Part shown: in pieces, positions 2,311 through 61,883 of the stretch
How the letters are laid out: each line of letters opens with the position of its first letter
Position numbering within the stretch: position 1 is the first letter of the stretch
NCBI GenBank assembly: GCA_963924565.1
Contig: OZ004613.1
Location: forward strand, 15,252,001-15,316,000
Direction of reading: 5' to 3'
Origin: Ascidiella aspersa
Taxonomy: Eukaryota
DNA length: 64,000 bases
Made by a program: the position numbers and the translations under genes
Notes under the pieces: generated by a model
Told to the model about the DNA's origin: nothing
Seen by the model: only the letters and a program-made list of their open reading frames with translations
Databases searched by the model: none

Positions 2311-5300
2311 CTACGCTTCAGAAGTGAGTTTTCCTGTAAAAAACATAAGCATGAAAATAATGCAAACGCATTTCCCACAAACTACATTTGTTATGAAAAC
2401 GTTTTCAAATCTGTCGTCGTTATTCTAATAAATCAATTTTCCTGAAGTCTATATAAGCACTTACCCCCTTCGTATGCCCCTCTTTCATCTGGTTTTCGGC
2501 GGCAATAGATGGTGACACCGAGGATTGCGGCGAAAACTACCAGCCCCAAAAGCGTCCAAAGTACGATTTCGGTTGTGTGGCTAGTCGACGGAGCTGTACA
2601 GAGGATAAGTGTTAAGGAGACAATCCTTAAACAAGGTGACAAGCGCGTTCACCTAATCGGATAAGACGGCTACTACGAATTTTTTTTTAACAGAAACAAA
2701 CATAAAAATCAGAAACAAGAAAGGCTAGGATATTACCTCCGCCAAACACATTGGACACAAACAAAAGAAAGTAAATAAACAGATTAGAAATAAAAAAAAA
2801 AAAACGCAACGTTAGCGTATGGTGAATACAATTAATTTGGAAAATCAAACAAAGATGTCTCACAATTCAAGGCGTGTTAACGGTTTAGACCATTTATGGT
2901 TTAAAGCGAACCAGGGTCCACATTTCATTCACAACAACTCTAATTTATTTCAATTACAGGGTTGGTTTACCTCCTAGGTCGCTGTAGACGGAAACCGACC
3001 TGCCCTCAAGTGGTTGCGCAGGACGAAAGTTACCGGAAAGCAGAGCTTCAGAAACCGCTGCATCTGGTTGAACAATAACTGTTGCTTAGCATTATTGCTA
3101 CACTTTAAAAAAACTATTCGGAGAATAAAAACTTTAAGAACAAAGTATTCGTAGAATAAAAACTAAAACAAACCCTAAATCCGAATCATTTAAATTAAAC
3201 GATAAAATTTGTATTCAGAATCATTAGATTGGACCTTTACAAAATAAAATCGTGAAGCGCTCGTGAAAATCATCGAAAAACATAAAAAATGTGCTTTGTT
3301 AACAAAATTATCACTGGCAAAACTGCTAGGTAAGCGAGAATACGAAAAAAAAAAAAAAAAAAAAAAAAAATAGACATGCTTGTTCCTTCAGTATAAAAAA
3401 TTACCTGTGTCTTTTAGCAGCGAGTTGGATGCATCCAGCGTTCCGTTTCCCTGCACTATTTCGAGATGGTGTAGTTTAAAGATCGATTGAAACGCTAAGA
3501 ACTGACAGAAAAACAGAAAAATCGTGGCGTTAAACAAGCGAAGCAAGCGTATTGACTTATTACGACTAGCAGCATTAACCCGGCCAAGTCGAGTAGGATA
3601 CACGCTTATATATTTCGTTTTAAATAAAGCTTTTTACAATAACGTTTTTCTAAAGTTAAGCTTTTTTCGAATCTACTCTTGCTCGGGCACATACAACAAT
3701 GAAGTTTCCTATATCTAACTTTATCTCAATTAATCTGATGATATTTTTGCAGGTAGATATCGTAAAGTGCATATGGGTGGACAATGAAAATTTTACGTTT
3801 TGCATTATTTAAAAAAGGCTTACTCGTTCTTTGCTGACAGATATGGGGTGAGTAAAGACCGACCACATTACGGATTGTGTACAAGGAGGCGTCGTAAGAG
3901 AGCCATAGTAGCGGTAATACGACTTGTTGGTGGGAAGTAGATCCATCAGATCCGGGCCATTGACAACGGGAAATTCATCGTCTGTAAAACAAACAAATAG
4001 TTAATCCCACAGGCGATTGTGAAAAGCTCTGAATTCTTCAGGTCTTGGATTGAGAGATATTTAACCTTTTTTTTTAAAGTACGGTAAACCAGATATCAGC
4101 TAAACAGTTGTGTGCAATATACGCAATTACACATGCTACTTTTATTGGAAAAAATGGATGGATTCGTTTCCACTGCCCTGTGTGTAAACTGAGCTTGGAC
4201 GTAAAAAATAAGCACTGTGTAATACATATATTCGAAACTGATTTGAGACTCAATTTTGGGAACAATATACAACAGATGCTATAAAATGATTAATAATTTA
4301 AGCGAACGACGTTAAACCATACTAAAGCACTGACTAAGAATTTTTATTGGATATTATTTAATTAAGTATTGGTATTGGATATCAAACGGTGTTAATTAGG
4401 TTTACTTCAGGCTACCTTCGTACTGGATCAAATCAAAATATTCGGTAAGTTTTTCCAGTGCTTCGTCAGCTTTATCCGATGGCAGCTGCCCTTCGTCAAC
4501 AACCTTGAAGAATACGCCAAGCACGGCAAGGTCATCTGTGTGGTCGTCATCGCCATCATCCTCTTTTTTATGGACAATGTGCATCTTAAAAAATATTCGT
4601 AAGGTTAATTTATTACATCAGGTGTCTTCAGGGTGGCAAAAAATCTACTGTTTTTTTCGCAAACAAAGCGATCCCACAAAACATATTAGCACATTACCAC
4701 CGACTTGTTGTGCCCTACCTTCACAAACATCTTTTAAATGCCGACTGATTTCGGTAAGAGCTTCCATAGATTCGCAGTTTACGTTAAATAAATATGCAAG
4801 TATATTTGCAGTTTCCTAGGTAATAATTAAACTTACACGTGTGTATTTAAAAAATCCGATACGAAATGCTCAGATTTAAAATTCTTCAAATCCCGGGTCA
4901 GTTATTTCAGGTAATATTTTTTTTTGAAAGGATAAAATTTGCAAAAAACGACGAGGTCAAACTTGTTTTATATTTTGTTACTAGAAAGACTGCGACGCAT
5001 AACACACGCAAATTTACAGGAAAACACATTTAGGATGTGAAATGGGATTACATAGCTGGCGCCAGGAAGTTACCTCGATTGGGAAGTGTTGGCCGTTTAC
5101 AGTGTGCTCGGAGCCACCAGTTGATGTGACGCCCGACTCAGACACGACAGCCCTGGCCCAATGAAAGTGAAGCTGATGTGCCTCAAACTGCATCCCTGCG
5201 TTCTCAAAGTACAAGTCTTCCGGCAGGTTGTACATCACTGACAAAACAAAACGACTTTTAGTCCAATACAATCGCACTAAAAGAAATACGCTTGTTGAAT

Positions 5301-8300
5301 TATGTTGCATTTAAATTTTAACGATTCATTTTTACGCACCCCAAAATAATATTATAATATTTAATGCTGAAAGCACTATCTCTCGAAAGGTTTTAAATAC
5401 AAGTAACGATTACTTTTTTTGTTTTTTAGTGGAAACAATTAGTGGATGTGCAGGACTTCTAAAAAAGCACAGTTATTGTTTTTTAAATTAGACATCCAAC
5501 GTAACTGATAAAAAAATAGCGTATGATAATACTCCAAATCGAATTAGACGTACTTTTTCAAAATAACAAAACTATTGCCGAATCTTAACAGAGGAAAGTA
5601 GCAAATTATACCTTGAAAAGGTACTCTTGGCGTGAAATTACACCAAAAAAGTTTTGTACAAATGCGCATGGTCTATAAATTCGCCAATCTTTCGAAAAAG
5701 TTCTCAAAACAATCTAAATGTTCTTTCGCTAGCATTTTACAATAAACGCAAACACCACAGAAGGCTAACGTTTTTTCCGGTCTACCTGTGTGCCCATTGT
5801 TAATCAGTTCGCCATAGGTTTGCTCGCTGTAAGACGGAGAAAAAGAAAGACGTTTAAGTTCAGCCGACTCCTTGATTGACTTGGTGGCAAAGTCGATGGG
5901 CGATTGCTTCGTTCCGCTACATTCCTTCTCAGTGTCTGACCAATGGTTGGGCCCTTTGCAGAATGTAACGCTATAAGTTAAAAATTGAAAAAAGTTTTTA
6001 CACGAAAAAAATGTTAAGGCCCTGTTTCAGTAAGACCAAATAGAAAATTAAGAATTGAATGTTAGACTGTAAAAAAATAACAATTATATTTTTGTATGAC
6101 ACGGCCAAAATGTTGTTTTTACCTGTTGATCGTGACAATTTGTACACGTATATTCAACTGCTTCTTGGGTTAATAACCCGTTTGACGTGATGAAGTTATG
6201 TGGCGTACACACAACCGCGTTAACGGATAAATTCGTTAACGGATAAATCATGGTTAATTCGTTAACGGATAAATCAAGTATTATTAATTTTACATAATTC
6301 CCAGTGAGTTAAACGATAATTGTATCATTTGGCGAATTATGTAATGATTTCAAGCCTAAAGTAATTGTTCTGATATGCTTTATTTCCCCAATTTTTAAGA
6401 GTTAGGGCTTCCTTAAAAAAATTAAGGAGGGCAAAAACCACTGATCTATCCTTTAACGTTTCTCTGGTCCTAGTTTGACTCTTAATTTGTATGTTGAACA
6501 TAAACTTTGCAAATATCTACATCTACACTCGCTTTAAATCGGTTAAAAATTTATTATTTTTAGTTTTGTTTATAAAGCACCACGAGCATAAAGTGCTGTG
6601 TGCCGCAGCTACCGTTTAACTGTCGCCCTTTTTGACTTTGCATGAAGCGTCAGGCAACCGTTTGCTAGACTGTCAAGCAGAAAACCCAATGAAATCTACG
6701 TTACAAAACAATCAAAGGCAAGTGAACCACTGATTTAACGTTTCTCCAGAATGCGTGTATACATAACACATAACAGGTCCCAAAGCGTAGCTAAAACTTG
6801 TGGTATAGAAAGCAGTAATCGTGCCGTCAGTTAACACGCCAGATAACACTGAAATTACCGACCCGTAGTACAAAAACGTGCCTAACATTCCAAGCGAAAA
6901 TCACTTTCATTCTCTATTAGGAAGCGCAGCACAAAGTAATCTATAAAGATTTGCATACCTCAGCAGAAACTGCAAAACCTACCGTGTTCGCCGTCGTAAT
7001 GCCAGCCACTTGCTGACGTCACATGAACATCTGCATAAACAGAGATTTAAGTCAGCGGTTTTACGTATCGTTTCAAATTGACGATAAGCAGACTTTGCAG
7101 TAAAACTTTTTAGGCGAACCTTTGCGTCTATCTTGTATAAATTAAAGCTTATAGGGGCGAAAAAGTAAAATGATTTAGAAATGCAAGAAAAGTAAAATGA
7201 ATTGTAAGTGCAAGACAACGCGGAAGTCCAAAACAATGCGCAAAATAGATTTGTGATATTTCCCAAACACCAGTCTTTCTACGTTGTCAAATGACACTTG
7301 GTTCACTTAGGAGTTGGTCCTTCGTCAGTTCAGCTGAGAGGGGGAACACGCAAATGCGATCAACTAATAGGAAAATACACAATAAGACTTACAAGGCAAC
7401 GATATCTAAAGCAGAATAATCTATAATACCAAAGTATTTAGACCAACAACAAAATACAGGTAAATTTAGTAATATCCACGACAGAATAAGATTAAATCGT
7501 CTGAATAAGAAAAAAAAAAAAATCAGACCTAAGGGAGTAAAAGATATCTTAGGGGGGCCGTTTATCTGAAAATCTAAAAGATAAGAAATGTAAAACGTCC
7601 ATTTTCGGCGTATTTAATCATAAAACGCTCCTTTTTTGCTCATCAGTATTTTGTCAATAGACATATACTTTGTTGTTGTGCCGCCGCCGTTTTTAGGTCT
7701 GATGCAAGTGAAAAAAGGTTGCGGAGCACTTGCCTATAGCGTTTTCGGGGAAAGCGGTTTGCTAAACAGTATTTCACAAGAGCATAAGTGCAGGTTCGTT
7801 GAAACATAAACCCTTGCATAACACTCACCGATGTCGTAGAATCCGGTAACGACCCTTCCGTTGAGTTCTTGGGTAGGCCGAAAGTTGTCACTCATTTCCT
7901 CATCTTCGTCTTGTTCCTCCATTGCGTGATTTGACTCGTGTGAGTCGGGCGCATCTGTTTAAAACAGGACAGGGTCACAGGAGTCACCAGTCTAGTGACC
8001 AGTTCCCTATGCACTGCAAGACACAACCGATTGAATAGAGCATTTATTGACGTACATAGTCTATACGCAGAGTACATAAACAGAGACTTGCTGAGTATTT
8101 CCGCATCCTATCAGAACATGGTCTCGACATATATACTTTGTTGCTGTGGTGGTCTAACTCACACTGTGTTTACATGAAGGACAAATTATACTAAATGAAC
8201 GTCATAAGAAAGTCATAATAGAAGCCGTGCTTCAAAACAACTTGCGGTGATAAAATAATACAAAAATATAGACTGAAATTCGTTTGTTAAAAATTTGATT

Positions 8301-11300
8301 GCAATTTACATTATTGTTTACATAATTCCATTCAAAATAAGTAATTAGCCAAATCGGATTTCATTTCGAGTAAATAAAAGCCATTTCAGATTGAATTTAT
8401 GTAAATAAAACGTGACGTTAACTTTATTCAGATATATAATGAGTTTAATGACTTAGGTGCACTTAAATCACCAACTTTACAAGTTTATTGAAAAAGACTT
8501 GACTTGGACTTAAGATATGTTAAAAAGGCTGGTTTGCAACACTGCCTTTATAACAGATAGCATAAACTCAATACATTTTAGATTCGTTTTTATACTTTTA
8601 GTTAAATCTTGTTGTACGTGGATGATACCCTACTTTTAAAACAACTTTTGGGTTGGGCACAATATATGAAAGAGCAGACATTCGTTGTAGTATTAAGATT
8701 CAGAACTATGCTTTCAACGCACATTGTTTAAACGTTTTTATAGTCTTTTCAGAATGGCGCTGGGCCTAGTTTGACTTTTAATTTGTATGTTAAACATAAA
8801 CTTTGCAAATATCTACATCTACACTCGCGTTAAATCTGTTAACAATTTATTATTTTTAGTTTTGTTTGTAAAGCACCACGAGCATAAAGTGCTGTGTGTC
8901 GCAGCTACCGTTTAACTGTCGCCCTTTTTGACTTTGCATGAAGCGTCAGGCAACTGTTTGCTAGACTGTCAAGCAGGAAACCCAATGAAATCCACGTTAC
9001 AAAACAATCAAAGGCAAGTGCATACCTGGGGGCGGGGTTGTTCGTTTAGGTGCCACCTTCAGACTTTGAAGTATTTTGAGCTGTTGATTAAAAGGGTAGA
9101 CATATCAGTATTTGTTGAAATAAGTGTTTCGACTTGAGAAACTGGTACCAGGCATTTTAATCTCCATTAAAGCACACGATACAACATTGTCGTATACTGT
9201 CAAAAATATAAAAACACATTTTCTTGTTTATTTCGTGAAGACTTTCCGCCTCCACACTAGTGTCAGAATTGCAATAAAAAGCTTGTAAAATTGCACATAC
9301 AAATTGATTCACGAAACGTTGTACAATGTTCTTTAAAATTTAAAGAATATCTTTTTAGCGATAACCAGAAACTTTTTCCCCAATAAAATGTGTTTGAGCT
9401 CAGTTTATCATTTATATGGACGGTTAATGGAAAACGCTCGACTACCTGGAAAACACTAAAGTCAAGGTGTGGCCAAACACGGCTATTTTTTTCAGTATCG
9501 ACACTGTCAATTTTCATGTTATTTAATATTTGCCTATTATACCTACATAATGCAAAAATATCGTTAAAATTCCAATATGTCTTTGTTTGGTAAATCTTGT
9601 TAGCATAAACACGCCGTGCGTCTCATGGCAGTTAGCTAAAATCTTAAGGGCAAGGTCTTTTGTCGCACTGTACGCTCCAAGGTATTTTGCTTGATTCCAA
9701 TTGCATATTGCATACGAGACTTTTGTTAAGGCATATTACATTTTTGCCAAGCCGCCATAAACAAATCAATGATCCGCCGCTGCTCGGATTCTATTTATTT
9801 TTGTAAAGTCAAGTAAAACAGATTTTGGAAATTTTGAATGCTTGATTGCATTTATTTAAGTCCTACAGTGTGAATGAAAAGATAAGGCTCTTTGTGGTTA
9901 CCCAAGAAATACCATCTTGCTTTTGGTCTCAGACTGGCTATGCACCCCTGTTCTAGTCTGTTAGTGAACTAGACCGTTGACATAAATTAGGACGATTAGT
10001 GCATGTGCTTTTTCCGGCCATTACGGCGCAGTACATGGCTCAGCAATGCGATAACGGAAACAGCGTAAGCAGTGTCGGTTGCCATATTTGGATACACGGC
10101 ATGTACGCTTGTAGAAAGAGTTTTCTGTTTTGAAATAAATTTACCTGATCAGGCGAGATTGTTACTGGGTTTTGGTAGACTGTCCACTGAACGGCCTCGT
10201 AGCAAGGCGGGGTAGTGAGCGAGCCAGAGTATCGGTAATAACTTCCGGAAACCGGAAGCAACGACACAAGGCTGACGTTCTTGCTGAGGTCGGCAGAGTC
10301 ACCTAAAAATGGAGTTTGTTTTGGTGTTTAAAATTACCATAATATTAAAATATTGGACATAGAGCAGAGAATCCAAAATCATTATAACCGAACACATACC
10401 ACTTTTAAACATAAATGTTACTTGTCGAATTATAGCAATAAGTCAGTGTTGTAAACAAGTAATTTTAAATCAAAAGGACTTAAGTCCCAGTCAAATCGTT
10501 CAGAAAATAACTTAAGTTCAAGTCAAGGTTTTTTTATTAAATCACAAGTAAAGTCCCAGCATAATTATATCAAGTCAAGTCATAATTATAGCTTATGACT
10601 TGAAGTAAATTCCAAGTCAAGTTCTTACTAAAATTAGAAAAATAAGATATATAAACGAATTTTATAAAAAAAACCTTCCTCATTTTAACCAAAGTCATTT
10701 GTCTGATAGACTTAGTCAAGTCAAGTCATTTGCCCAAAAGACTTAAGTCAAGTCAAGTCATTTTTCCCAAATAACTTGAGTCAAGTCAAGCAATTTAAAA
10801 ATCAGTTACTTAAGTCAAGTCATTGACTCAGTTTAGTACAACACTGTATTACGTTGCGTGTTATATTCCGCCGCAGACAATCGGCGATTATAGACCACAA
10901 TGCATCATCACGGACTGATAAATATTATACAAAAATATTACTTTTTTAATAAATTGCGTAAAGGAGCATGGTTCAAGTTTTTGTCGTTGTAATTGGTAAG
11001 TCACGACAGATTTTTATTGAGTTGTTCGCACACAAAGAAAACGTTTAACATTTGTGTTCTGTACCGCTATGACATTTTCGTGCAATTTGTTCAACTAAAA
11101 AATGACCAACAATACAATTAAATCTTACTTAAGATTTCATAGAATATATAACATTTGGTGCAAAACTTCTTCACGCGATTTGTTTTGTTTTTGCCTGACG
11201 AGCAAAATATTTTACTAGTTCATCATTGTGATATTTCTTTGCGATAAAAGTGCGAAGAAGTACCAAAAACGAAAGCATTTGGGTGGGGCCTTTTGCATCA

Positions 11301-13555
11301 ATCAGAGTGTAAATTTGGCGAAAAGTGCAAAACTTCAAAGATCAAACGTCTAGTTCAAGGACAGATAAGCTTGTTTTATGAAAAAATTAAATGATTTTTA
11401 TTAGCTTTTGACATAACCTACTAATAATGGAACAGGTTTTAAGTCCACAGAAAACCTGCATGGCCGCACGACACATTGGTAAATTAGTAAGTAGAGCACA
11501 TCTATACATTCTTATTCAGTTTAGGAAGGAACTTGGACTTTGCCAGTTTGAATTGCAATTGATTGGGTGTCACCAAAAGCAAGTGTCAATCGCATCTGAC
11601 AAAAAACTCAAGATATTTTTAGCACAGTAAAGGGCATTTGATGTACTTGTATTTTAAGTGGGTAACAGTTAAGGAACAATTTAACGAATAATTGAGATTA
11701 TTAAAATATCAGTTATAATTTAATTATCCACTTCACCTTTTTGCTTGGCCAATGCAGCGGTTTCCAACAAGGTTTGGTAAGCTGCATTATTTTTGTTTCC
11801 ATTTGCTTCAAGAAAAATTCCTAAAACGGCTAAACCATCGCTCATATCCTTTATCTGGTCAACGCTGGTATATGGGTCCTTGATGTGGACAATGTGCATC
11901 TTTACAAATAATAACTTGTTCAAATAACCATTTTCATTATTTTTTAATAAATTTTAAAATTAGAAACTTTAGATTTAAATAAAAAAATAGGTTAGAATAA
12001 AAATATTTTCATGCACAACAACAAAGCATAATTTCATGTAAGTGCATAGGGCCCCAAGATTTTAAAATGGTAGTTTAATGTTTATTAATGTTAGTTCATC
12101 AAAAAAGTAACATCACAGCATGGAAAAGTACTGTGACTAATTATTTAAAACAGGAAGCAGAGTATGGCATGTTCATAGGTTGGCAAGTGTCAGCCACGTT
12201 CCAACAAACCTAATACAACATCTGCTTGTTGAGTTTATAAAATTATATAAATGAATGAAGGTTAACATTAGCTCATTTTAGATGAAGTACATATATGATG
12301 GAACCATGAAGAGGATATGTCACTCTAATCCGTACCACATCAATTGTTGTTGACTCTCATCCTATTTTCAATTGATTTATCCTTTTCAAAGCAGTGCAAT
12401 TTATTCCACAATTAAATTAATTAATCTAAAGCTTTTAATTTCAAAGTAATTTAAAGTTATACATTTTTAGTCTAGTAAACATTGTAATAAATAATTTTGA
12501 GTAAAACTATATTTAAAATAATGCATTTTGACTTGTCATGCTGCCTATATCGACATTTTTGTTACTTTGCATACAATTAAAAAAAATAATGTACACCAAC
12601 CTCAGCATCAAAGAAGTGGCCATTGACAGAATGCTCAGAACCACCATTAACAGATGAATTGGCAGCCCTCCAGTGAAAGTGTAGCTGGAGAGCTGTATAG
12701 GTGCCATCAATGCCACTCCCACTTAAACGAAATACCTTTCCCTTGGGAAAATTGAGCTGCACTGAACATTGAGATGTAAATAACAATTAATAACTGTAGC
12801 TTTATTGACACAAAAACACTACGATTGACTAGGGTGCTAATTAAAAAAAATACAAATTTAAATACTAAAGCTAAAAACTGCAGTTCACAGGCAATGTGAT
12901 GTTAACATTCTTAATAACTTGTTTGAGATTCAATATCAATTAATAATGAAGCAGCTAATTAAATGTTAACATTAGTCATCTCTGAACAAGATTAAAGTAA
13001 AGAATTCCAAATTGGTGGTTACTATTTTACTATAAATATATAACCTGTATGGCCATTATTGATAAACTGTCCATCGGACAGGGATTGGTCATAACCCATT
13101 AATTGTAGAAAACCAAGTTTGTCATCTGGCACCACAGAGCTTGTCATTATGTTTATTGGAGATTGAGAAGACAAGCCACATGCTGGGTTCAACACATCCC
13201 AATCTTGTGGACCTTGATTTTTGAAAATAAAACTTTATACTGTATGCTATTAAATTACCGCTAAAAAGAAATCTAAAATTTATTTTTACTAACCACTTTT
13301 GCCTTTGTATTTCCAGTTTGATGCAGAAACATCTAAAAAAAACAATTGTGATAAAATAACAAGGGTATATGTACATATGTAACAATTGTTCTAGATGTAT
13401 ATAAAATTTAGACAAGTTTGGTTTAACATCTCATGGTAATTATTCTAATAAAAGTAACATATAATGTAGATAATATTAAACTCCAAACTTATTAAGTTGT
13501 ACTTACCATCACAAACAAACAAACCAAACCAAATGCAAAGGAGTGTGAAATACAT
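2311..13555 (-). CDS. Tandem two-domain alpha-carbonic anhydrase, type I membrane protein, 655 aa, 17 exons
   Basis: Exons (minus): 13555-13507, 13332-13294, 13212-13045, 12761-12601, 11899-11737, 10302-10145, 9080-9026, 7954-7829, 7030-6983, 5953-5786, 5237-5074, 4584-4416, 3981-3824, 3501-3405, 3063-2971, 2593-2465, 2333-2311. All are GT-AG and phase-compatible and sum to 1968 nt with no internal stop. Layout: signal peptide [16 protein letters not shown]; two sets of [53 protein letters not shown]; [24 protein letters not shown]; tail [19 protein letters not shown]. Confidence 0.85.
2971..7030 (-). other. alpha-CA domain 2 (membrane-proximal) exons
   Basis: [102 protein letters not shown]. 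Confidence 0.95.
6464..6724. repeat. ~260-bp direct duplicate of intronic 8760-9020
   Basis: Near-identical sequence (about 11 substitutions by eye) in two different CA introns. Confidence 0.95.
7380..7510. repeat. Dispersed repeat fragment, also at ~14830-14965
   Basis: aa(t)a/gagactta.aa.gcaac.ata.ctaaagcagaa...gtattta.accaac.ac...gaataagattaaa(a)tcgtct.aataaga is shared between the two sites. Confidence 0.7.
7829..13332 (-). other. alpha-CA domain 1 (N-terminal) exons
   Basis: [101 protein letters not shown]. Confidence 0.95.
10444..10846. mobile_element. Old hAT-type MITE with AAGTC pentamer arrays
   Basis: TIR CAGTGTTGTA...TACAACACTG; dense AAGTC/GACTT arrays; degenerate 8-bp TSD caataagt/tattacgt. 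A related fragment lies at ~8440-8545. Confidence 0.7.
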
Positions 13556-19300: not shown

Positions 19301-22300
19301 GGCGGGCGACGGCATTGGAGCCTTTACTTCCCACCGGCCGAGCTGGCGGTCAAAAACTCCCCCCACTATCGACACCAGCTTATGCTCGATTTCGTTTACG
19401 TGATCCTGCAAACGAAAACACAAATCAGTTGTTAGTAGGGCGATATTTTTGACCTAAAAATGAGAAATTTCGTCCTAAAATTGTAATTTATAAAAGACAA
19501 ACAACTTTTTAAATTCTGAAGAAAAACAAGAAGCTGATTATTTTAGAGAAATGTTGTGTAAACAGTTAAAATACAACGTAAGAATAAGACTTAATATATT
19601 ATCGAAACGTGAAATGTGTGATTAGAAAATCACAAGCGCAAAAAATACAGCAAATACCTTTTAATACATTAGTCCACATCATAGATACACAACTATATAA
19701 AGCAAAAACGAAGTTCGAGCTGATCCTAATGCGACAAACTAGGCCTGGGAGGTTAATTAAGCCGGCTCGCGAATACAGTATATTGCTCTAATGAACATAT
19801 GATACAGTTACAATGTCGTTGAATATAATTTACTACTATTTTTTTTTATAACACTTTAACTGAATGACAATTTCAAAAAGCTGACTATAGTTTTTTTTCA
19901 TTTTTGTAAACGATTTACGTGCATCAAGTTGGATTTGAAAGAAGTTTGACAAATATTGGCCTAACGTATAAATTCTTGACAATTTTTTGTAATAAGCATT
20001 ATTAAAATACACAGAGCAGCCCTCGAGTCTTGTAAAGTTACAACAGACTTGGTATATTGCAAGTGGAAGGTAAAATCGTAAGGTCTGCACCTAAACAGGC
20101 AATTAACCTTGAGCCAACCTTTTAGTTCAAACCGATTACTTTATGGCAATCAGACTAAAGAATAAAGATAAAAGAGAAACTGCGACAACCTTTTTTTTCC
20201 GGGTCATCACGTGGAATGCGACAAACAAAGTTTCGGTAGGAAGTAGGTACACACACTAGTGCAGTTTAAATGTTCAAACTCGGTTCGCGTGCCCGAAGGG
20301 GTATAGGCTAAATTTTAAGCGCAGTGTTTTGTTTTTTTAGCCCTACTTCTTTACCACGGTTTAACGCACATGCTTTCATGCATACATGGTTCTACAGCAA
20401 TTGGTCCCATACGCTACTTTGTTTTCAAATCATATTTAAACCCTTTTTAGCAAATCATCGATCCAACTCGACACAATTTTGTTGAAAAACTGCAAGCGAA
20501 ATAATTACCCGAACCTGAAAGTCTTTTGTGACGTGATCAAAATGACGCAGCACCGATCGGTGCTTGTGTGGCAAGGTTATATCGTCGTCGGTGTCACGTA
20601 ACTGAAGGTTAACGTGCGTCATCAGCTTGCCCTCAAAGTGAGTTCGTATCGACGGAATGCAGTGAAGGACAAGCTAAATAATACAGGAAAATACAAGGCT
20701 TGTTAAGTCGGTAAACTATCAAACAAGACCAACGTGCAAACATAAGAACAACTGCAAACTCATATGGTGCAGTTATTAATATGAAAATAAGGGGTAATTC
20801 ACAATTACCAGCTAAAATGTGTTCAGCAAAGTTTTACAACTGCTTTTTCAACATTATGGCACATTAAATTTGCAAGATTGTTTAATAATTTCTGATTTAT
20901 AATCATGTTTTAAATCTGCACAGAAAGCATTTTATATTATTGAATATTCTTTATAATGACATACTGTGTTCGAACAAGTAAATCCTTTGCAGGTCGGGTT
21001 AGTTGCCACTTGTAACTGTGTACAACTTGATACATTGATTAAAATATTTGATTTAAAGTCTTTGATTTGTAGTCAGCTTCAAGCTAGACCACAATGCGTA
21101 TAGTAAGTGTTTTAAATAATTATTTGGTTAACCAAAAAATGAGTGCGTTAAACGTTTTTTACTTGTATTGGAATTGCTACCGGGTTTTAACAACCGATAA
21201 GGGTTGTTTATTTAAAAAATTCTAAACCAACAAATTACTTGAGGTATTCAAACAGTTTCGCGCGGCGCCCGGAAAGTACCCACCTGTAAACACCTTGAAG
21301 CCAGCGCGAGATTTTTGGTCGTGATCGTTTTCAGTCCAACAAGCTGCAACGCGCCGGCGCCCAGCACTAGTTGGCAAGTACGAGAGTTGAACAGGGTCAG
21401 GAGGTCACGCAAGCGGTGAACCAAATCCGGGGTTGAGGTCGGAAGGTCGTCGGAGCATCTGTGTGCAATTATAAAGCATTCAAGAAGATGCCAATTCACA
21501 ATGTAAAATACGTTGTAGACTGTTAATAGGACAGTGGCAAATCTAATGATGAAAGAAATTACATCTGACAGCTTACAAAGGGCTATTCTTGATTTTCGCT
21601 GGCTATATTTATCCAGGCGCTTTTGCAAGCGGCGAGTAAAAACGACAACATAATTTGGTATAAAACTCAACGGCTTTTGCTGTCGAGATTCGCAAACAAG
21701 ATGCAAATTATGCAACAGATAACCTTCTCATAAAATTAGAGGCGGGCCTGAATGTGAAAAAGGCAGATCATTATTGTGTGCTTTTCGAAACAGGCCTAAA
21801 CTATCGGACCGCGGGCACGGCAAATACTTACTTGCAGTATTCGGTGACCATCTTAAGCAGAATGAGGACGGTTCCAACCACTGCGTAATTCTCGCCATCA
21901 ACTTCGAGACACTCGCTGCTGCTTTTGCTGTTGCGTAGAACATATAAATGGTGAAACATTTCCAATCTTATGGATCCGGGTATAAGATTTTGTCAGAAAT
22001 AATATCGGTTGGACTAATTTACGTACTTTTAAAAAATCAAAATGATAAAAATTGAGAAAAATTAAGTTTTGATATTGTGAAAATTACAAAAAAAAACAAT
22101 GTACAGGGTAATTAGGCTGCTTATCAGCACGATTGTCGGAAACCTAAGACCGAAAATTAAGAAGATACCTGTTTTATCATATTAAACTAAGACACGCTTA
22201 GGTAAAATCAGAAAGTTTCCAACCTGTTTTCTGTCACAACACCCTTTCCTGTTTTCGAAAATCACAACGCGATTCTCAAATTTTAAATCTGAAAGTTGAC

Positions 22301-25300: not shown

Positions 25301-28300
25301 AGAGATATTTTGCTTTAGTGGTGTTTAGCACAAATTGCCCTACACTAACGAATTAAATTCCTCTCCGAAGTCAATCAGCACTCAAACGGAGCGAATTGCA
25401 CTCGCATTGGCGAGCGGGCGAGTGCTTAAGCCCAACCCTGCATATATTCACAAGTACTCTCAATGAACATGCTCCTTTAAGATCATTTTCCAGAAGAAAA
25501 AAAAACTTAAACAAAAGCCCTGGATAACTAAAGCAATATTCAAATCTATTAAAACAAAAAATAAATTATTTCGAGAGTGCTACAGATGCAAAAGTGTAAA
25601 TAAAATAAGTAAATACAAAAAGTATAGCAAAAAATGAACTCAAATTAAACAAATAGCAAAACAACAGTACTTTCAAAAACAACTACAAGAAAGTAAATCA
25701 TCAACCCAAACTTGGTCAACCATAAAAAAAATAATTAACAACAAAACACATAAAACTAGCATAAACAACATTACACAAGATGGGAAGCTAATTACAGACC
25801 ACCAGGAAATAGCAGCGCAAATGAACAAACACTTTTCAACTATTGGGAAAACTTTGGCAGACAATATTGAACCAACACAAAAACATTTTAGTGATTTTTT
25901 ACAACATTCCTGCTCAAACTCCCCTTTCCTTGCACCTATAACAAAACTTGATGTAAAAATACAGATAAAACAACTTAATAATAAAAAATCAGAGGGCCCG
26001 CACTACATTCCAGTACGATTTATAAAAATGGCAATTGAAGTTATAACACCATATTTAACTGCTCTATACAATGACTGCGTCATTTTGTTCTACTTTCCTC
26101 AATGTTTGAAAATAAGTCAAATAACACCAATACCTAAGATTACAAACCCTAATAAATGTTATGATTTTCGACCAATATCTATCACTCCAATATTCTGTAA
26201 AATATTTGAAAAAATTCTACTGCAACAAATGTTAAGTTTTCTGAAGAAAAATAAAACAGTTACAAAGTACCAATTTGGGTTTCGCCAAAAACATTCCACA
26301 GATCTTCTCATAGCACACTTTTATGAAAATATTTTACACAGCCTAGACCAGGGGTCGGCAACCTACGGCCCGCGGGCCGGATCCGGCCCGCCGATGTTAT
26401 TCATCCGGCCCGCCGCCTCTTTGGCAAATTAGACACGAGTCTATTTCACAAACTTTTCTATTTCACAAACGACTATTTCAAGTACCTAATTGCGAAAAAT
26501 TTTCGCGCTTCGCGCGAATGCTAATTCTACGTCCAGTTTGTTTACGCTTAGATACTGCCTTTTCAACCAGACCAGCGATTTTTACCGTTGCGCCGTGGAA
26601 CACTGGCAAGTACGTCGCCCCAAACGGAAAACGTATAAAAAAAAATATTGGACATTTTTTATTTTTATTTTCGGCATTGTAATAAAACCTTGCAAGAAAT
26701 ACCGGTGTAACCCCCCCAAAAAAATCGAGCTCGCTTCGCTCGCCAGGTTTGCCTTGACTTAAAAACGTTAACAAACCCTGAGCTAGATTAACTTTAAATG
26801 TTATCGCGTTCCTTCAAATTAGTTTTATTACACTTTTCATTAGTAGTATGGACAACGAACGTATGAACTCGAATTTTAAACCAAACAAACGTTTTTTTTT
26901 TCGCGCTTTGCGTCAACACCTTACGGCCTCTGTAAAAGTAATTAAGCACGTTTTTAAGTACAAAAAATCCGAGCCCCAGCTGATTCAATTCTTAGTTATC
27001 ATTTTGAGCGGCCCGCAAAGACCTTTTTGAATTTGGTCTTGGCCCGCGACTAGAAAAAGGTTGCCGACCCCTGGCCTAGACAGACAAGCATATCACTGCA
27101 CCATATTTATGGACTTATCAAAAGCTTTTGACACAATAAACCATTAAATTCTGGAACACAAATTACAAAACTATGGCCTTAGGGATGGACCATTGGAACT
27201 GCTAATTAGTTTTATTTCTGGACGAAAACAATGCACAATAGTCAATGGAATAATATCAAAACCCAGAACACCAACCTATGGCTTGCCACAGGGCAGTATT
27301 TTATCTCCACTTTTATTTCAACTATATATTAATGACTGACCAGAAACCAATCCTTTACAATGTAGACTATTTGCGGATGACACAATTCTGTTTCAATCTC
27401 ACAAACAGTTAACTGAACTTCAAACAAAAATACAAATTGGAATAAAACATGCAGACATATGGATGAGATGTAATCAATTATCAATAAATTACAGCAAAAC
27501 CAATTACATGATATTTCACTACACACGGCTACCTGATTTACAAGAGTTTTCAATTAAAATAGGAACAAAAATAATTACCAAAATAGGCATTACTAAATAT
27601 CTCGGACTTTATATAGATGAAAAACTAACTTGGAAAAACCACATATCATATATATCATCCAAAATAGCCCGTAACACAGGCATATTAGTGAAAATAAAGA
27701 AATATGTTAATCAACCTACTCTTCTAACATTATATTATGCATTAATTCATCCTTATCGCCAATATTGCGTAATCAGTTGGGGGCGCACCTATACTACAAA
27801 CCTCAACCACATCCAAACACTTCAAAACAAATCAATAAGAATAATTACGAACACCCACATTACAACGCCAATCAAACCTATTTACAATAGACTCGCCATA
27901 CTCCAAATTTACCAGTTAGTAGAATTAGAAATTTTTAAGTTCATGTATAAATTTGAAAAACAAGGCTTAACCTTAGTTTTCAATTCATAACACAAGGCAA
28001 AATAAATCAAAAAACTACTTCCATCCCCAAATTAAAACCGATGCAGGGAAAAGAAGCTTAAAATTTGTTGCAGTTAATCTATGGAAACTCATACCCAACA
28101 CGGCCAAACAACTACCATACAAAAAATTTATTTCCTTTATAAAATATGACTTTCTTAATAATTAAAATTCGTAAAAACACAATGTGAGCACGTGTGTTGT
28201 CGTGGAAACCTGCGCAAGTTAAAAAAATCCTATGCGACAACGCAAATTTTGTTAATGCTGCTTCTCTCTCCTTATTTCGTAATATTGAATTATTGTTGTG

Positions 28301-31300
28301 TTTTATCGAAAATATATTTTTTCTCAAGTTTTCTTTGATGTTTTTTTTGTTTTTTTTCTATAGTTTTGTGTTTCTTGGCAGTACCCGTACCCGTATATAT
28401 TATACAATCTATCATGTTTTAAGGGGTGGCTGACTTGGTGACCTTCGGGTCTTTCGTCACCCTGCACGTTTATTTCTTCGTTTCTTTGTATTTGTTTTCC
28501 AAAATCACTACAAAACGTGCAAATAAAATATCTATCTATCTACACAAATTGTTCATTTTTCTATAAACTCTCATTCAAAGTGTGCTTAAAATAGTTTCGA
28601 AATCGAGTGAAATATTGCCAACCAGGTTTTAACCGAATGTTTATTGTAGATTGCATACCTTTGATCTTCATTTGTCACGTGACCATTGGTTAAGTCATTG
28701 GGTTGTGACGTCACGTGTCCATCGACCAAGTTCTGAACAAGGCGAGAAAGCTCGGGTGGAACTTCAGCCTAACAATATATGTGTATTTACATATGATAGC
28801 CTTGTTGTGTTAAATATAGAGTACTTATATTACCAATCTTTGTATATGGCCGTATTTGTCCTAATTCTAAATAGAGAAATCAGGTGGCACTGTATAAAGA
28901 CAAATTGTATTTGATTCTCGACAAGCTTTCGCACAACCGTGCTTCATCAGGTCAAAGTATAAATGAAAACAATTAAAATGCACGTAAAAGCACAGGCGCA
29001 AGTAAAAGGCGATAAGAATGGTGACGTCTAACATATCCACAGGCACATGCTCGCAAAAGCGTGTTACTGACGCAAAAACAATTATTCTACGATGCCTGCG
29101 CTTCAAGGTACGATGGGTGTAGTACAGCCTGCTATGAGGTGTAGTGTGACATAAAGCCCAAATCCCGATTGAGCCCCACATTAATGGCATCGAACTTTTT
29201 AATTATGTTTTGTTCGACTGTGAGCCTCGCTTGGGTGCCGTTACTTACTTTTTTGATCACCGAAACTCTAAGGTCTTTTACACTGTGTGATCCTTGGTTA
29301 AAATGTTCGCCGACCGGTTTCTCCATATGTCCATGCCTTATGTCACTTTTATGTCCATTCATGCGCTTTCTGATTGTTTGTCCAGTTTCTCCAATGTATA
29401 TGGTTCGGGGAAATTTTACGCATGTGATTGCGTAAACCGCATTGATGGTATCGCAGTTGTAATTGCCGCCGACTTCAACGCTGCTGCCGTTCGGTCCTTC
29501 AATGATGTGACTTCTATTGATATGTGAGCACAGTTCACAACGACTTTTCCCGCAGGGCAGGGTACCAAAGTTTTGCTTTTCGTCTTTAAATTTGCTGGAG
29601 ACGACTATGTTGCGCATGTTGCGCGGTTGCCGATAACTTATAAGTGGCTTTAAAGGAAATATCGAAGCGGTTTTAGGAACATTTTAACCAAAGGATCACA
29701 CAGTGTAAAAGACCTTAGAGTTTCGGTGATCAAAAAAGTAAGTAACGGCACCCAAGCGAGGCTCACAGTCGAACAAAACATAATAAGAAAGTTCGATGCC
29801 ATTAATGTGGGGCTCAATCGGGATTTGGGCTTTATGTCACACTACACCTCATAGCAGGCTGTACTACACCACCCATCGTACCTTGAAGCGCAGGCATCGT
29901 AGCATAATTGTTTTTGCGTCAGTAACACGCTTTTGCGAGCATGTGCCTGTGGATATGTTAGACGTCACCATTCTTATCGCCTTTTACTTGCGCCTGTGCT
30001 TTTACGTGCATTTTAATTGTTTTCATTTATACTTTGACCTGATGAAGCACGGTTGTGCGAAAGCTTGTCGAGAATCAAATACAATTTGTCTTTATACAGT
30101 GCCACCTGATTTCTTTATATTACCAAGGAATTAAATTGTACTACATCAAGCTGTTTAAAAACACCGTTAAACATGTGTACAACTTCTCACTTGTTTCCAA
30201 ACTTCGTTGTCCAGAATAAGCGACAGTTTGTTTCTTCGTTCCTCGTGAAACCGCGCCACGAAGCGGTGGGCTTGTGTCTTAAGGGCGCCACGTAGCGACC
30301 CGTTTAAGTTGAGGTTTCTGTCCTCAAGAGGTCGCCCTACAAAACATCAAGCTCGATTTGTTATTTTACAACATAAGACAAAAGGTCCTCCAATCAATTC
30401 AGATTAATAGACTAATTTTAAAAGTATATAACTAAACGTTGTATTAAATTCCTTTGGGAAACAGAAAACATTATGTTTTTGCGTAAACCACCGGATTTAT
30501 GTTTAATATGCATTCAATAATTGTTAAACTGAATTACGAACACTCCCAGTTATTTTAGCAGTATTACCAACACTCGCAGAGATTTAGCTGTATTACTAGC
30601 ACTCCCAGCGATTTTAGCAGTATTATCAATACTTCAAGTGAGTTTAGGTGTATAGTGAACACTCCCAGTGGTTTTAGCAGTATAAGCAATACCCCCCAGT
30701 GGTTTTAGCAGTATTAAAAACACTCCCAGTGATTTTAGCAGTATTAGCAATACTCCCAATAATTTTAGGAGTATTAGCAATACTCCCAGTGGTTTTAAGG
30801 TGTTTGACGATTGAAAAACAAAAATTATTTTAGGACAATTTGTCAAAATACCTGAATCGCCGCCGCTTTGACGACGAACAACGGATTCCGACTCGGTTGT
30901 AAAACGCTTGACCGATTTTGCGAGTAGTAAGAACTCGCTCGATCCGAGTTTGTCCAATGAACTGTCTTTGCCTTTAGCAATGAGAACTTTTACACATCTG
31001 AAAATTCATGTGAAATTAAGCGCCACTAACAAAGGGTTAACACATAAAACATATTTAGGAGATGGAAATAAGGTATTTATCTCAAATCGCCTAAACTGCA
31101 AAACAATCCTTAAAATGAGGATTGCTGACTATGTGTCTTAAGCACACGGCAGAAACGCTCATCTCTACGTAGCGAAATATTGAAGATATCTAACGATCTA
31201 ACATCTACTGAAAACTTTCTGACTGCGGGTGCGTTAGTTTTAAATGGGGTTATACAAACTGTTTCATTTTTTATTTTTTTGAAAATAAAATGTTTATAGG

Positions 31301-56829: not shown

Positions 56830-58071
56830 ATGAAGGGAACACAAATTGAAGTAACGTGTACAAGCCGAGAAAATGTACTAGAGCTCCAGAACAAGCTTGC
56901 CAAAGTGTCATATCTACGAAATGTGCGTCTTTTCGAGAGTGATGTTATTAATGTGGGTATCGGATGGGTGCCAATTCCTTTCTCTAGTGAAAGTATCGAA
57001 GAAAATCTAAGCTCGCATTTTGGCGAGGTGAAAAAGATGACTCATAGAAAAGATAAACAGGGATTACTGTCAGGCATGAGAATTGCAACCATGAATAAAG
57101 CAGATGTACAAGAAAATCCCATTCCGAGCTACATTTACGTGGATGGGTTAGAATTTTATGTAACCTACCATGGGCAGCAGTTTACATGCAAATACTGTGG
57201 GGAAGCTGGACACAAACAAGTAAAATGTCCGAAAAGGCTGAACGACTTTCCAGAACTCCTAAACCAGGATACAGACAGACAACGGAAAGCGCCGTTAGCT
57301 GCCAGCGCACAGCAAATTAGAACGCCTCTCTCGCCTGGTTCGACTGCTTTGACGCAAAAACAACCTGCAGATCAGACTTGTGCTGATAAGCACTTGCATA
57401 ACGGACAAGCCGCTCCAATGATAACTGATAAGAACGTACACCTGAAGGCTGGCGAAGGAAAAGACGACTCCCAACAAGATTCAAGAAACGAAGCAGCATC
57501 GAACAAGACAAAGTTTTCAACAGCAAACTTCAAGAAACGTCTCCGCACGAGCCCTCCAGCTTTGCCAGATAGCAAATCGCAGAGCCTCTGCGAAGACACC
57601 ATATCTTTGATTTGCTCAAAATGTAAAACGGAAAGCACAATGGCTCCGGATTCCAAGCACTTTCACTGTTACAAGTGCAAGAGTGATTTCAATATAGTAA
57701 AGGCCTGTTGCGAAGATGCTATGTACCTGGTCCCAGCCAAGCAAAGGGAATTCTGTTGCCCAAAATGCCACTCCAGCATGCGGTGGATGCCATGTTGCCA
57801 GGAAATCCAGCCGGAATTTCAAGTGGACGGAGACGTTTTCGAATGCATCCAGTGTGAAAGGTACTCTATTGCTTGTGTATGCAAAACACTTAATGCGGTT
57901 CCAAAGCTCACTACGAGCAAGGAATGTACTAACCACCTGTGTAAGTTTAAACTTGTTAACTGTAGCTGTGGACAAAAGTCAGCACAGCAAATCGAACCTA
58001 GGTGCCCATATAGATGTGCATGTGGCTTTGAATACGAATGGGACATTGACTTAGGAGTAGAGCGGGTGTAA
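56830..58071 (+). CDS. Tx1-type ORF1 (RRM-like region, CCHC knuckle, Cys-rich C-terminal extension)
   Basis: VP..FS.E.I...LS.FGEV; LSGMR; IPSYIYVDG.EFYVTYHGQ.FTCKYCGEAGHKQVKC is the typical Tx1 ORF1 pattern. Confidence 0.9.
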   Translation: MKGTQIEVTCTSRENVLELQNKLAKVSYLRNVRLFESDVINVGIGWVPIPFSSESIEENLSSHFGEVKKMTHRKDKQGLLSGMRIATMNKADVQENPIPSYIYVDGLEFYVTYHGQQFTCKYCGEAGHKQVKCPKRLNDFPELLNQDTDRQRKAPLAASAQQIRTPLSPGSTALTQKQPADQTCADKHLHNGQAAPMITDKNVHLKAGEGKDDSQQDSRNEAASNKTKFSTANFKKRLRTSPPALPDSKSQSLCEDTISLICSKCKTESTMAPDSKHFHCYKCKSDFNIVKACCEDAMYLVPAKQREFCCPKCHSSMRWMPCCQEIQPEFQVDGDVFECIQCERYSIACVCKTLNAVPKLTTSKECTNHLCKFKLVNCSCGQKSAQQIEPRCPYRCACGFEYEWDIDLGVERV

Positions 58072-58118
58072 CTCTCTTAGATGTAAGTGTTTTTTATTTT
58101 TGTTTAATCTTTATACTT

Positions 58119-61100: not shown

Positions 61101-61883
61101 CATTACATGTCTTACGATAACCTCGCCCAATATTACAGCTTTTCCACCAACAATAATGATTATTTAGAACATCTAAAACTAATTTCGGCTATCCCTGGAA
61201 AATGGGACTTGAATGAACCTAGTAACATATCCATGATTGACAACAAGTTGCAGACTTGTACCAAATTTCTCTTAAAACTTGATACAGTTAAAGAAATTTA
61301 TTCACATATTAAAGATGCTGGCTTGTCCCCCCCAGTCAAACAGCAAATCAAGTGGGAACAGATCTTGCAAGTTTTACCAAACCGAATCCCTTGGGACAAA
61401 CTTTACCAAATTAACTACGACTGTACCGTGGAAAACAAACTTAGAAGTTTTCAGATAAAATTAAACCTTAGGGCCATCGTCACCAATGACGCCCTGTGCT
61501 CATTTGGAATTAAAGACTCAGATAAATGTGTTTTCTGCTGCGATGCATTAGAAACTGTAGCGCACGTGTTTTATTTTTGTACCAAAGTAGTAACTTTCTG
61601 GGAAGAAGTAACTGCCTGGATCTCGACGAAACTTCTGATTGATTTACGCCCTGACCCTGTTCATATGTTGTTTGGTGTTGTGGCGGATCAATCTGAAACC
61701 CTTTTGAATTGTTTGTTGTTGTGTGCGCGTTTCGTAATTTACCGCTGTAAGTACGCCGAATCCGTGCCGAATTTCAATATGTTCCTAAATATGGTTAAAT
61801 CTGTTCAGAAGTCGGAACATCTTATCGCCATTCGGAATTGTAAAATTAACGACTTTCTTTGCAAGTGGCAAGGGCTATTTTAA
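58119..61883 (+). CDS. Tx1/L1 ORF2: APE endonuclease + reverse transcriptase + C-terminal CCHC, intact 1254 aa
   Basis: INIASFNVAG, LLQETH, NIYGPN, GGDFN, RIDFF, SDH; KSPGLDGFPAEFY, YRPITLLNTDYK, LDIYKAFD, GVRQGDPLSP, LADD; CVFC....ETVAHVFYFC. Confidence 0.98.
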   Translation: MPINIASFNVAGIRDGTKRKSIFNFIRDKKYHITLLQETHCCPADEKLWRMECGGEVIWAHGTKRSRGVAILFSKRLTYSVTDLIADPLGRFLIASLIVGDRKITLTNIYGPNSDSPTFFDSVFSNLMTSSSPDLIIGGDFNVILNEKLDKSTGPQHANRNSRSTIRAHMNTLGLHDAFRVLHPTTPKYSRIQINPKVATRIDFFLVSQTLMCDVFTTDIVQGIMSDHKIVTISIKLAPSLHGTGYWKLNNNLLGDKKYLTVIRSTIKDYNITNPKGHVNPHVRWDALKAVVRGVSIKYSSEFKKQIKAKQYNLEKAIGDLEHEITTSTQPLFNKNDELTKRKNELDMLVETRTKGAIIRSRAQWAEMGEKNTKYFLNLEKRHTAKKAINRLNVGDTICTDQTQIMEELTSYFEQLYKTNNNKYSLPAIKSQLAKLNLPQLNTEQFAASELPITAHELHTAVLCMPKNKSPGLDGFPAEFYQAFWPEIKDIFLDSWSHTEKTGRFSPTQSQGVVTLIPKPKKDHLFTNNYRPITLLNTDYKIVSKVINNRIKANLQHLVSHDQNGFITGRFIGDNLRLLFDIMDLTDSCEIPGAVLSLDIYKAFDTVEWDFIYEAMQSFGFGNNILHWLRCCYNNPSCKITNNNFLSRVFGIERGVRQGDPLSPTLFVLCIECLASALRADEFVGIKLFNNEFKVSLLADDTLVFLKGDQVDFDRVFNVLDEYGLMSGCKINMNKSLAFYVGPGRQIRTERPFLDKGLAWPAESFRYLGIEVPIMSRDDLFKLNFGNFLSNIGTILNVWSSRGLTLLGRICILKSLVIPSLIYKVSVIPINLPKNFLRKLKTKLFQFIWGSKWERIKRTKLCASVAQGGANMIDVDAYILALSMKWVTKLFDDSNKAPWKKLERSSISNNEIECWLRGSQSALSQKARKLIPLQTIRKTIADCKQLISIMFTNLRDGRPLWINDQVQYRKQTFFIKTMINAGILDYAHLINNTDHYMSYDNLAQYYSFSTNNNDYLEHLKLISAIPGKWDLNEPSNISMIDNKLQTCTKFLLKLDTVKEIYSHIKDAGLSPPVKQQIKWEQILQVLPNRIPWDKLYQINYDCTVENKLRSFQIKLNLRAIVTNDALCSFGIKDSDKCVFCCDALETVAHVFYFCTKVVTFWEEVTAWISTKLLIDLRPDPVHMLFGVVADQSETLLNCLLLCARFVIYRCKYAESVPNFNMFLNMVKSVQKSEHLIAIRNCKINDFLCKWQGLF

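Follow-up and report, generated by a model that had tools for sequence, protein, structure and literature searches.

Alpha carbonic anhydrases (CAs) with two domains in one chain are known from an alga and from animals. In the halotolerant alga Dunaliella salina, Dca/p60 is an internally duplicated alpha-CA located at the cell surface. Here we report on a double-CA gene in the ascidian Ascidiella aspersa. The gene lies on the minus strand, from position 13555 to position 2311, of a 64,000-nucleotide stretch of DNA (GenBank assembly GCA_963924565.1, contig OZ004613.1, positions 15,252,001 to 15,316,000 of the forward strand) that we call the window, and its coordinates are given as positions of that stretch. 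A preliminary description of the window, made from its letters, had proposed that what look like two CA genes join in frame to encode a single membrane protein. The algal protein is soluble or surface-attached, unlike the predicted ascidian protein, and is of unrelated origin.

Among animals, giant clams provide functionally studied examples. The tgCA protein of Tridacna gigas is a dual-domain, membrane-associated alpha-CA (Leggat et al. 2005, FEBS J 272:3297), and the DDCA protein of T. squamosa is a dual-domain alpha-CA of 601 amino acids (PMC5879104). Like the window protein, these clam proteins have about 600 amino acids, a signal peptide, two complete alpha-CA domains that each carry an active site, and a C-terminal hydrophobic anchor, and they have been proposed to handle inorganic carbon at the epithelial surface. 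They differ in being of independent origin, and the clam anchor may be glycosylphosphatidylinositol whereas a transmembrane helix and a cytoplasmic tail are predicted here.

Vertebrate CA XII and CA XIV share with the window protein an extracellular disulfide, a single C-terminal transmembrane segment and a short tail, and they are sister to the tunicate domains in our careful tree (see below), but they have one catalytic domain per chain instead of two in tandem. A further comparison comes from teleosts, where dozens of species have a predicted 'carbonic anhydrase 4-like' protein of about 570-590 amino acids. These gene predictions resemble the window protein in that two alpha-CA domains occur in one predicted chordate chain, although they trace to a separate duplication. 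The earlier statement that vertebrate membrane CAs are single-domain proteins holds for tetrapod CA IV, IX, XII and XIV and fails for teleost gene catalogues. More generally, the background of the preliminary description was incomplete, given that dual-domain alpha-CAs were already known in giant clams and are predicted in many teleosts.

When the translation of one exon of the ascidian gene (E6' in Table 1) was scored against 1.84 billion representative proteins, 5579 matches were returned. At least two CA stretches are present in about 140 of the 150 best, which shows that chains with several CAs occur widely among predicted proteomes. A second search, based on shared words, returned both clam proteins, many two-domain proteins of bivalves and gastropods, and dozens of the teleost 'CA4-like' two-domain proteins. 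In the literature, searched also under other names for tandem CAs, only the clam and Dunaliella cases were found. The double-CA architecture is thus already known, and the ascidian protein is a further case of it. Its occurrence in annotated relatives had been named in advance as grounds for doubt, and it does remove any claim to novelty while leaving the proposed structure of the gene intact.

We consider it very likely (with a probability of roughly 0.88) that the locus is a single ascidian gene for a type I membrane glycoprotein with two tandem, active extracellular CA domains, which arose by an old in-frame duplication of an exon block. The window protein agrees with the clam-type architecture in having two complete alpha-CA domains, a signal peptide and a C-terminal anchor in one polypeptide, as indicated by RNA joints, an open frame and orthologues.

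Gene structure

With splice sites read from the sequence and exons joined computationally, 17 exons form one open frame of 655 codons, from an ATG at 13555 (13555-13553) to a TAG at 2313-2311 (Table 1). All 16 introns of this joined model are of the GT-AG type, and the 64-kb window sequence contains no N. Most exons can be placed in two blocks, E2-E8 for domain 1 and E2'-E8' for domain 2, whose phase series (1,1,1,0,1,0,1) are identical with the small exons E2, E7 and E7' included. Exon sizes are also mirrored between the blocks (168/168, 161/164, 163/169 and 158/158). The exon coordinates, canonical splice sites and mirrored sizes given in the preliminary description all proved correct on re-reading, as did its statements that E8 lacks a stop and ends in a phase-1 GTGAGT donor and that E2' is entered at phase 1. 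The present model adds E2, E7 and E7'.

The alpha-CA family profile (PF00194) is matched by nine of the ten exon translations tested, and the matches follow profile order as two full series. Exons of the first block cover successive profile positions 3-57, 61-108, 109-155, 168-216 and 223-251, and those of the second block cover 3-57, 77-108, 109-160 and 171-215. A six-frame scan of the whole genome (308.6 Mb in 75 contigs) recovers the same double series at this locus. In addition, the orthologue from Phallusia mammillata aligns to the window by tblastn with the same exons in the same order. An open segment at about 9339-9160 was considered as a missing domain-1 exon and was ruled out, since RNA joints put that exon at 9080-9026.

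Table 1. Exons of the dual-domain CA gene and the intron between its two domain blocks, with window positions
Feature	Start	End	Strand	Description	Evidence
E1	13507	13555	-	Start codon; hydrophobic N-terminus resembling a signal peptide; phase-1 end	Sequence; orthologues also have an N-terminal hydrophobic segment
E2	13294	13332	-	39 nt; first part of domain 1, with the W-x-Y motif; corresponds to E2'	Canonical AG/GT, phase 1 to 1
E3	13045	13212	-	168 nt; domain 1; Cys41 (CA II position 23), His84 proton shuttle (position 64)	PF00194 positions 3-57, E 1.1e-10
E4	12601	12761	-	161 nt; domain 1; zinc ligands His113 and His115, and Glu128; last codon Glu139	PF00194 positions 61-108
E5	11737	11899	-	163 nt; domain 1; third zinc ligand His141	PF00194 positions 109-155; 6 RNA reads with loose ends linking it to E6
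E6	10145	10302	-	158 nt; domain 1; Thr223/Thr224 (positions 199/200), Cys227 (position 203)	PF00194 positions 168-216, E 5.8e-17; joint 9080/10145 in X3 contig
E7	9026	9080	-	55 nt; domain 1	RNA joints 9080/10145 and 7954/9026; tblastn of Phallusia orthologue
E8	7829	7954	-	126 nt; encodes the acidic insert and final strands of domain 1; lacks a stop; phase-1 GTGAGT donor	PF00194; joint 7030/7829 in 6 RNA reads and X3 contig
Inter-block intron	7031	7828	-	798 nt; between the two domain blocks	Skipped in RNA
E2'	6983	7030	-	48 nt; phase-1 start; inter-domain linker and start of domain 2	Joints 7030/7829 and 5952/6982
E3'	5786	5953	-	168 nt; domain 2; Cys334, His377	PF00194 positions 3-57; RNA joints
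E4'	5074	5237	-	164 nt; domain 2; His402, His404, Glu422; last codon Glu433	PF00194; joints 5237/5786 and 4584/5074
E5'	4416	4584	-	169 nt; domain 2; third zinc ligand His435	PF00194; 12 RNA reads continue from 4416 into the first bases of E6'
E6'	3824	3981	-	158 nt; domain 2; Thr519/Thr520, Cys523	PF00194 positions 171-215, E 6.1e-16
E7'	3405	3501	-	97 nt; domain 2	Splice signals, frame, tblastn of Phallusia orthologue
E8'	2971	3063	-	93 nt; end of domain 2	Splice signals, frame, tblastn of Phallusia orthologue
E9'	2465	2593	-	129 nt; predicted single transmembrane helix (about residues 611-638), then basic residues	Hydropathy scan; colinear with transmembrane segment of Phallusia orthologue
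E10'	2311	2333	-	Final 7 codons and TAG (2313-2311)	Splice signals, frame

A single transcript spans both CA blocks

Stranded raw paired RNA sequencing reads from the same species (run X5) and three other runs were mapped to positions 4380-10340. About 6% of X5 was sampled, which gave depths of 2-8. Six X5 reads with six different starts cross the joint 7030/7829 between the two blocks. These reads skip 798 bases with CT..AC ends, equivalent to GT..AG on the minus strand, and their number equals or exceeds the counts for neighboring introns (2-4). Other X5 joints are 5952/6982, 7954/9026 and 5237/5786; 4584/5074 are also joined, and loose read ends connect E5 to E6 (6 reads) and E5' to E6' (12 reads). 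Moreover, one spliced contig from a second run, X3 (depth 48.9), carries the joints 10145/9080, 9026/7954, 7829/7030 and 6982/5952 together, corresponding to E6-E7-E8-E2'-E3'.

None of these splice joints is present in the genomic DNA run X1, which indicates that the joined form comes from RNA rather than from a processed genomic copy. The first mates of all X5 reads from exons lie on the plus strand, as expected of minus-strand RNA in a stranded library. Three depth bins fall entirely within the 798-nucleotide intron; two of them contain no X5 reads, and the third (7365-7563) has a little depth on both strands where a high-copy repeat lies. The bins at the two edges extend into the flanking exons. 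The junction reads that had been suggested as a check were therefore found, and they confirm that the two CA blocks belong to one transcript and one membrane protein.

The intron at 7031-7828 was also scanned for a hydrophobic exon that would start with ATG and end in phase 1, and only weak, non-hydrophobic candidates with poor donors were seen. This agrees with the earlier remark that the intron holds no ATG or signal-peptide exon. Likewise, no RNA read in the X5 sample across 4380-10340 hinted at a separate first exon for domain 2.

Two further observations were made in these data. At position 5874, a third codon position of E3', all five X5 RNA reads have A where the assembly has G on the plus strand, which is probably a silent polymorphism between individuals. 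High-copy repeats occupy introns at about 7365-7563 and 8360-8558, and loose read ends are numerous at 7469-7510 and 8484-8520. The word depth of X1 is about 1,400-1,900 across 7365-7762 and about 10,500 at 8360-8558, compared with about 90 nearby.

Predicted architecture of the protein

The encoded chain begins with a hydrophobic stretch. Domain 1 occupies roughly residues 19-307 and domain 2 roughly 312-605, with about 8 linker residues between them. A strongly hydrophobic, predicted transmembrane segment at 611-638 is then followed by Arg-Arg-Lys and a tail of about 20 residues. In the predicted topology, a cleavable signal peptide would be followed by domain 1, the linker, domain 2, the C-terminal transmembrane helix and a cytoplasmic tail. 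The signal peptide and the helix were judged by hydropathy. In the window protein the single segment over the threshold is 611-638, and the N-terminal segment falls just under it. The preliminary description had likewise placed a signal peptide before domain 1 only and a transmembrane segment with tail after domain 2 only, which the sequence and the hydropathy scan support.

Identity between the two domains is 36.6%. Both have the features of the alpha-CA family, including a PF00194 match and all zinc ligands and catalytic residues. In CA II numbering, each keeps Cys23, Cys203, Asn62, His64, Gln92, His94, His96, His119, Glu106, Glu117, Val121, Val143, Leu198, Thr199, Thr200 and Trp209. This residue table bears out the claim that the zinc ligands, Glu106, Glu117, Thr199, His64 and the Cys pair are intact in both domains. 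Two N-x-S/T sequons occur in each domain.

The hydrophobic N-terminus, the Cys23-Cys203 pair in both domains and the one C-terminal transmembrane segment with its basic stop-transfer sequence are features of type I extracellular CAs. Both zinc sites are predicted to face the cell exterior or the secretory lumen because the N-terminal signal is the sole hydrophobic segment besides the C-terminal helix and because the disulfide pair typical of extracellular CAs is present in each domain. The protein is thus most simply read as a type I ecto-enzyme whose two active sites lie outside the cell, and both domains would catalyze CO2 + H2O <-> HCO3- + H+ at the cell surface. By analogy with vertebrate CA XII and XIV and the clam DDCA, the role of the protein is probably in surface pH and bicarbonate handling.

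Domain 1 carries an insert before its last strands that is proline-rich and then strongly acidic (about residues 254-287; E7 at 9026-9080 and E8 at 7829-7954), and in its place domain 2 has a different, longer E7'. The tails of all tunicate-clade proteins have a Tyr-x-x-Gly motif a few residues past the basic stop-transfer sequence (KYSEGK, AYEGGK, KYTKG; window 2311-2500; proteins P0017, P0160-P0165, P0010, P0023 and P0025). This motif may be a sorting or phosphorylation signal.

Orthologues in other ascidians

One of the database matches to E6', the Phallusia mammillata protein (P0017; A0A6F9DJ08 / CAB3262943.1), has 656 amino acids and is colinear with residues 5-655 at 56.5% identity. A word search with this protein returned full-length two-domain orthologues from Clavelina lepadiformis (an unnamed protein of 670 amino acids), Ciona intestinalis (XP_002120107.3, 'carbonic anhydrase-like', 674 amino acids) and Styela clava (LOC120343427, 733 amino acids), together with unnamed marine transcripts. 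Identity to the Phallusia protein is 45% for Ciona, 47% for Clavelina and 39% for Styela, and the window protein is nearer to Phallusia than to any of these three. Thus, the same protein is already catalogued in public databases for four ascidian genera. These entries are automatic or transcript-derived, and no literature was found on an ascidian dual-domain CA or on LOC100185503.

The orthologues (656-733 amino acids) share the layout of the window protein, from the signal peptide through two alpha-CA domains joined by a short linker to the one C-terminal transmembrane segment and the basic tail. When the 16 positions named above were checked in ten proteins of the tunicate clade, 15 were kept in 20 of 20 domains and position 62 was kept in 19, the exception being an Asp in domain 2 of Styela. 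Both active sites thus appear to be kept in the four sampled ascidian genera and in six related unnamed sequences. An N-terminal hydrophobic segment exceeds the threshold in nine of eleven proteins (the ten and P0165), with the window protein and Styela just below. In all eleven, the linker is short and a single C-terminal transmembrane segment precedes basic residues, and none has a hydropathy segment inside either CA domain. Domain 2 evolves faster, with 55% identity to Phallusia compared with 66% for domain 1.

Origin of the duplication

To place the domains, each was excised with a local hidden Markov model. A quick tree of 64 rows was followed by 70 rows including Tridacna, which were analyzed by a careful IQ-TREE run and a second quick tree (support given as ultrafast bootstrap / Shimodaira-Hasegawa-like approximate likelihood ratio test). 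All 20 tunicate domains form one clade (99/93). Within it, the ten tunicate D1 rows (domain 1) group together (97/90), and eight of the ten D2 rows (domain 2) form a clade (100/100). Across ascidians, D1 thus groups with D1 and D2 with D2.

Vertebrate CA XII/XIV is sister to the tunicate domains at 92/80 in the careful tree and at 88 in the first quick tree, and the second quick tree does not resolve this placement; CA IV, VI, IX and XV fall outside the set. Teleost D1 and D2 form their own clade (100/99). Bivalve domains also form a clade (90/93), within which D1 including Tridacna D1 (100/99) and D2 including Tridacna D2 (100/98) separate. The pattern expected if the tunicate and clam duplications had shared descent, with D1 joining D1 and D2 joining D2, was not seen in the tree. 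Approximately unbiased tests on groups named after the tree had been seen reject a clade of tunicate D1 with teleost D1 (p = 0.0016) and marginally reject one of tunicate D1 with bivalve D1 (p = 0.035).

From these trees, the tunicate duplication is lineage-specific and independent of the clam and teleost duplications, making the shared architecture convergent. It also predates the split of Styela from the Ciona, Phallusia and Clavelina lineages. The earlier view of an old internal duplication of an exon block is thus upheld by the matching phases, the colinear orthologues in four genera and the domain trees. In the proposed course of events, the block E2-E8 would have been duplicated in frame within a CA XII/XIV-type gene. 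Because the block starts and ends in phase 1, such a duplication would keep the reading frame.

A broader and tentative proposal is that tandem ecto-CAs arose independently at least three times: once each in teleosts, in bivalves and in stem tunicates, where the source would have been a CA XII/XIV-type gene. Under this proposal, gastropods, crustaceans, flies, acoels and sea anemones probably represent further origins. Such convergence might reflect a functional benefit of joining two domains as a fixed, covalent pseudo-dimer, which could for instance mimic the CA XII dimer, rather than mere gene dosage. We regard the proposal as possible and would give it rather less than even odds.

Structure prediction

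An AlphaFold2 model of the Phallusia orthologue, built with a 40-sequence alignment, has a mean predicted local distance difference test score (pLDDT) of 87.4 and a predicted TM-score (pTM) of 0.80. The model includes two CA folds, a disordered loop at 258-275 that corresponds to the acidic insert of domain 1 (pLDDT below 50), and a transmembrane helix at 606-637. A Foldseek search with this model returned human CA XIV (5cjf_A) first, with 38% identity and a TM-score of 0.89 over the target, followed by CA III, XII, XIII, I and II. The matches to human CA XIV, XII, III and II have E values of about 1e-28 and TM-scores of 0.87-0.91 over the target, and no solved PDB chain among the Foldseek matches covers both domains.

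The pTM of the model is only a hint that the two domains hold a fixed mutual orientation. An ESMFold2 pair prediction of D1 against D2 of the same orthologue gave a score of 0.02 and a mark of 0.34, which counts neither for nor against their packing. The protein might be a covalent pseudo-dimer with specialized sites.

Alternative explanations

Some points weigh against a single gene for a membrane protein with two active extracellular domains. The activity, glycosylation and localization of the protein are deduced from its sequence, and the signal peptide and transmembrane helix from hydropathy only. The joints among E1-E5 and E6'-E10' come from splice signals, phases and colinearity with orthologues. 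RNA depth is low in the small sample of X5, which leaves room for a minor single-domain isoform. The last point, together with the facts that tandem CA genes are common and that this genome has other CA clusters, could favor a model in which two adjacent single-domain genes yield a secreted CA (domain 1) and a membrane CA (domain 2) and the junction reads are rare read-through products or chimeras. However, domain 1 has neither a stop codon nor a terminal exon, and no ATG or signal-peptide exon for domain 2 was found in 7031-7828. The bins wholly inside the intervening intron lack X5 reads except over the repeat, and the joint between the blocks is read as often as its neighbors or more often. 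With the fused architecture also kept in Phallusia, Ciona, Clavelina and Styela, we judge the two-gene model to be highly improbable.

Two other models accept the fusion and differ in what the domains do or where they lie. Inactive CA-related proteins exist in animals, including CA VIII, X and XI and the CA-like domains of RPTP gamma/zeta, and the faster evolution of domain 2 could indicate that one domain is a non-catalytic module of this type for binding or scaffolding. This seems quite unlikely because both domains in each of the ten tunicate-clade proteins retain the zinc histidines, Glu106, Glu117, Thr199, His64, Val121, Val143, Leu198 and Trp209; position 62 in domain 2 of Styela is the one difference among the 16 positions. 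A different topology, with an internal transmembrane segment that leaves one CA domain extracellular and the other cytosolic, has been proposed from a TOPCONS prediction for the clam DDCA, which has a similar architecture (Koh et al., PMC5879104). A similar topology here is very unlikely, given that hydropathy segments are absent from both domains in the eleven proteins and that most orthologues add only the N-terminal signal segment. An internal transmembrane segment would also fall within the CA beta-sheet, and the Cys23-Cys203 pair and N-x-S/T sequons occur in both domains.

Other loci and elements

Further CA clusters in the genome were noted at 28707729-28717108 on the plus strand (C5) and at 9670257-9698149 (C9). 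On one strand, the C5 locus (28.704-28.722 Mb) carries two CA exon series in succession, separated by about 7 kb, and it could be a second tandem or fused CA pair. It was rejected as a close paralogue of the gene described here, as its identity is 41-53% and is confined to the most conserved exons. Among the database matches, nine predicted proteins (P0001-P0009) of 1,283-3,007 amino acids carry 4-9 CA stretches. One of these is an MMETSP protist transcript of 1,841 amino acids with 6 stretches, which indicates that very long poly-CA chains exist in protist transcript data.

Elsewhere in the window, an apparently intact non-LTR (long terminal repeat) retrotransposon occupies 56830-61883 on the plus strand. 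Its first open reading frame (ORF) encodes 413 amino acids without a Pfam match, and its second encodes 1254 amino acids with endonuclease (PF03372), reverse transcriptase (PF00078) and zf-RVT domains. An ORF at 25821-26432 on the plus strand has a weak reverse-transcriptase match, and another at 29132-29617 on the minus strand has a GIY-YIG nuclease domain; the two may be remains of a Penelope-like element. An open segment at 21248-21715 on the minus strand has a strong Vps54 match (PF07928, E 4.5e-23) and is an exon of a neighboring Vps54-like gene. An Rfam search of the window gave no match.

Implications

The analysis adds transcript proof in this genome, a full exon model and evidence that tandem CAs of tunicates, bivalves and teleosts are of independent origin. 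For genome annotation, this is an ordinary gene whose form is also predicted in four other ascidian genera. The transcript data confirm the dual-domain membrane CA as a real, conserved tunicate protein and not an annotation artefact from fused tandem genes. Ciona or Phallusia would offer a tractable chordate model for why tandem ecto-CAs evolve repeatedly.

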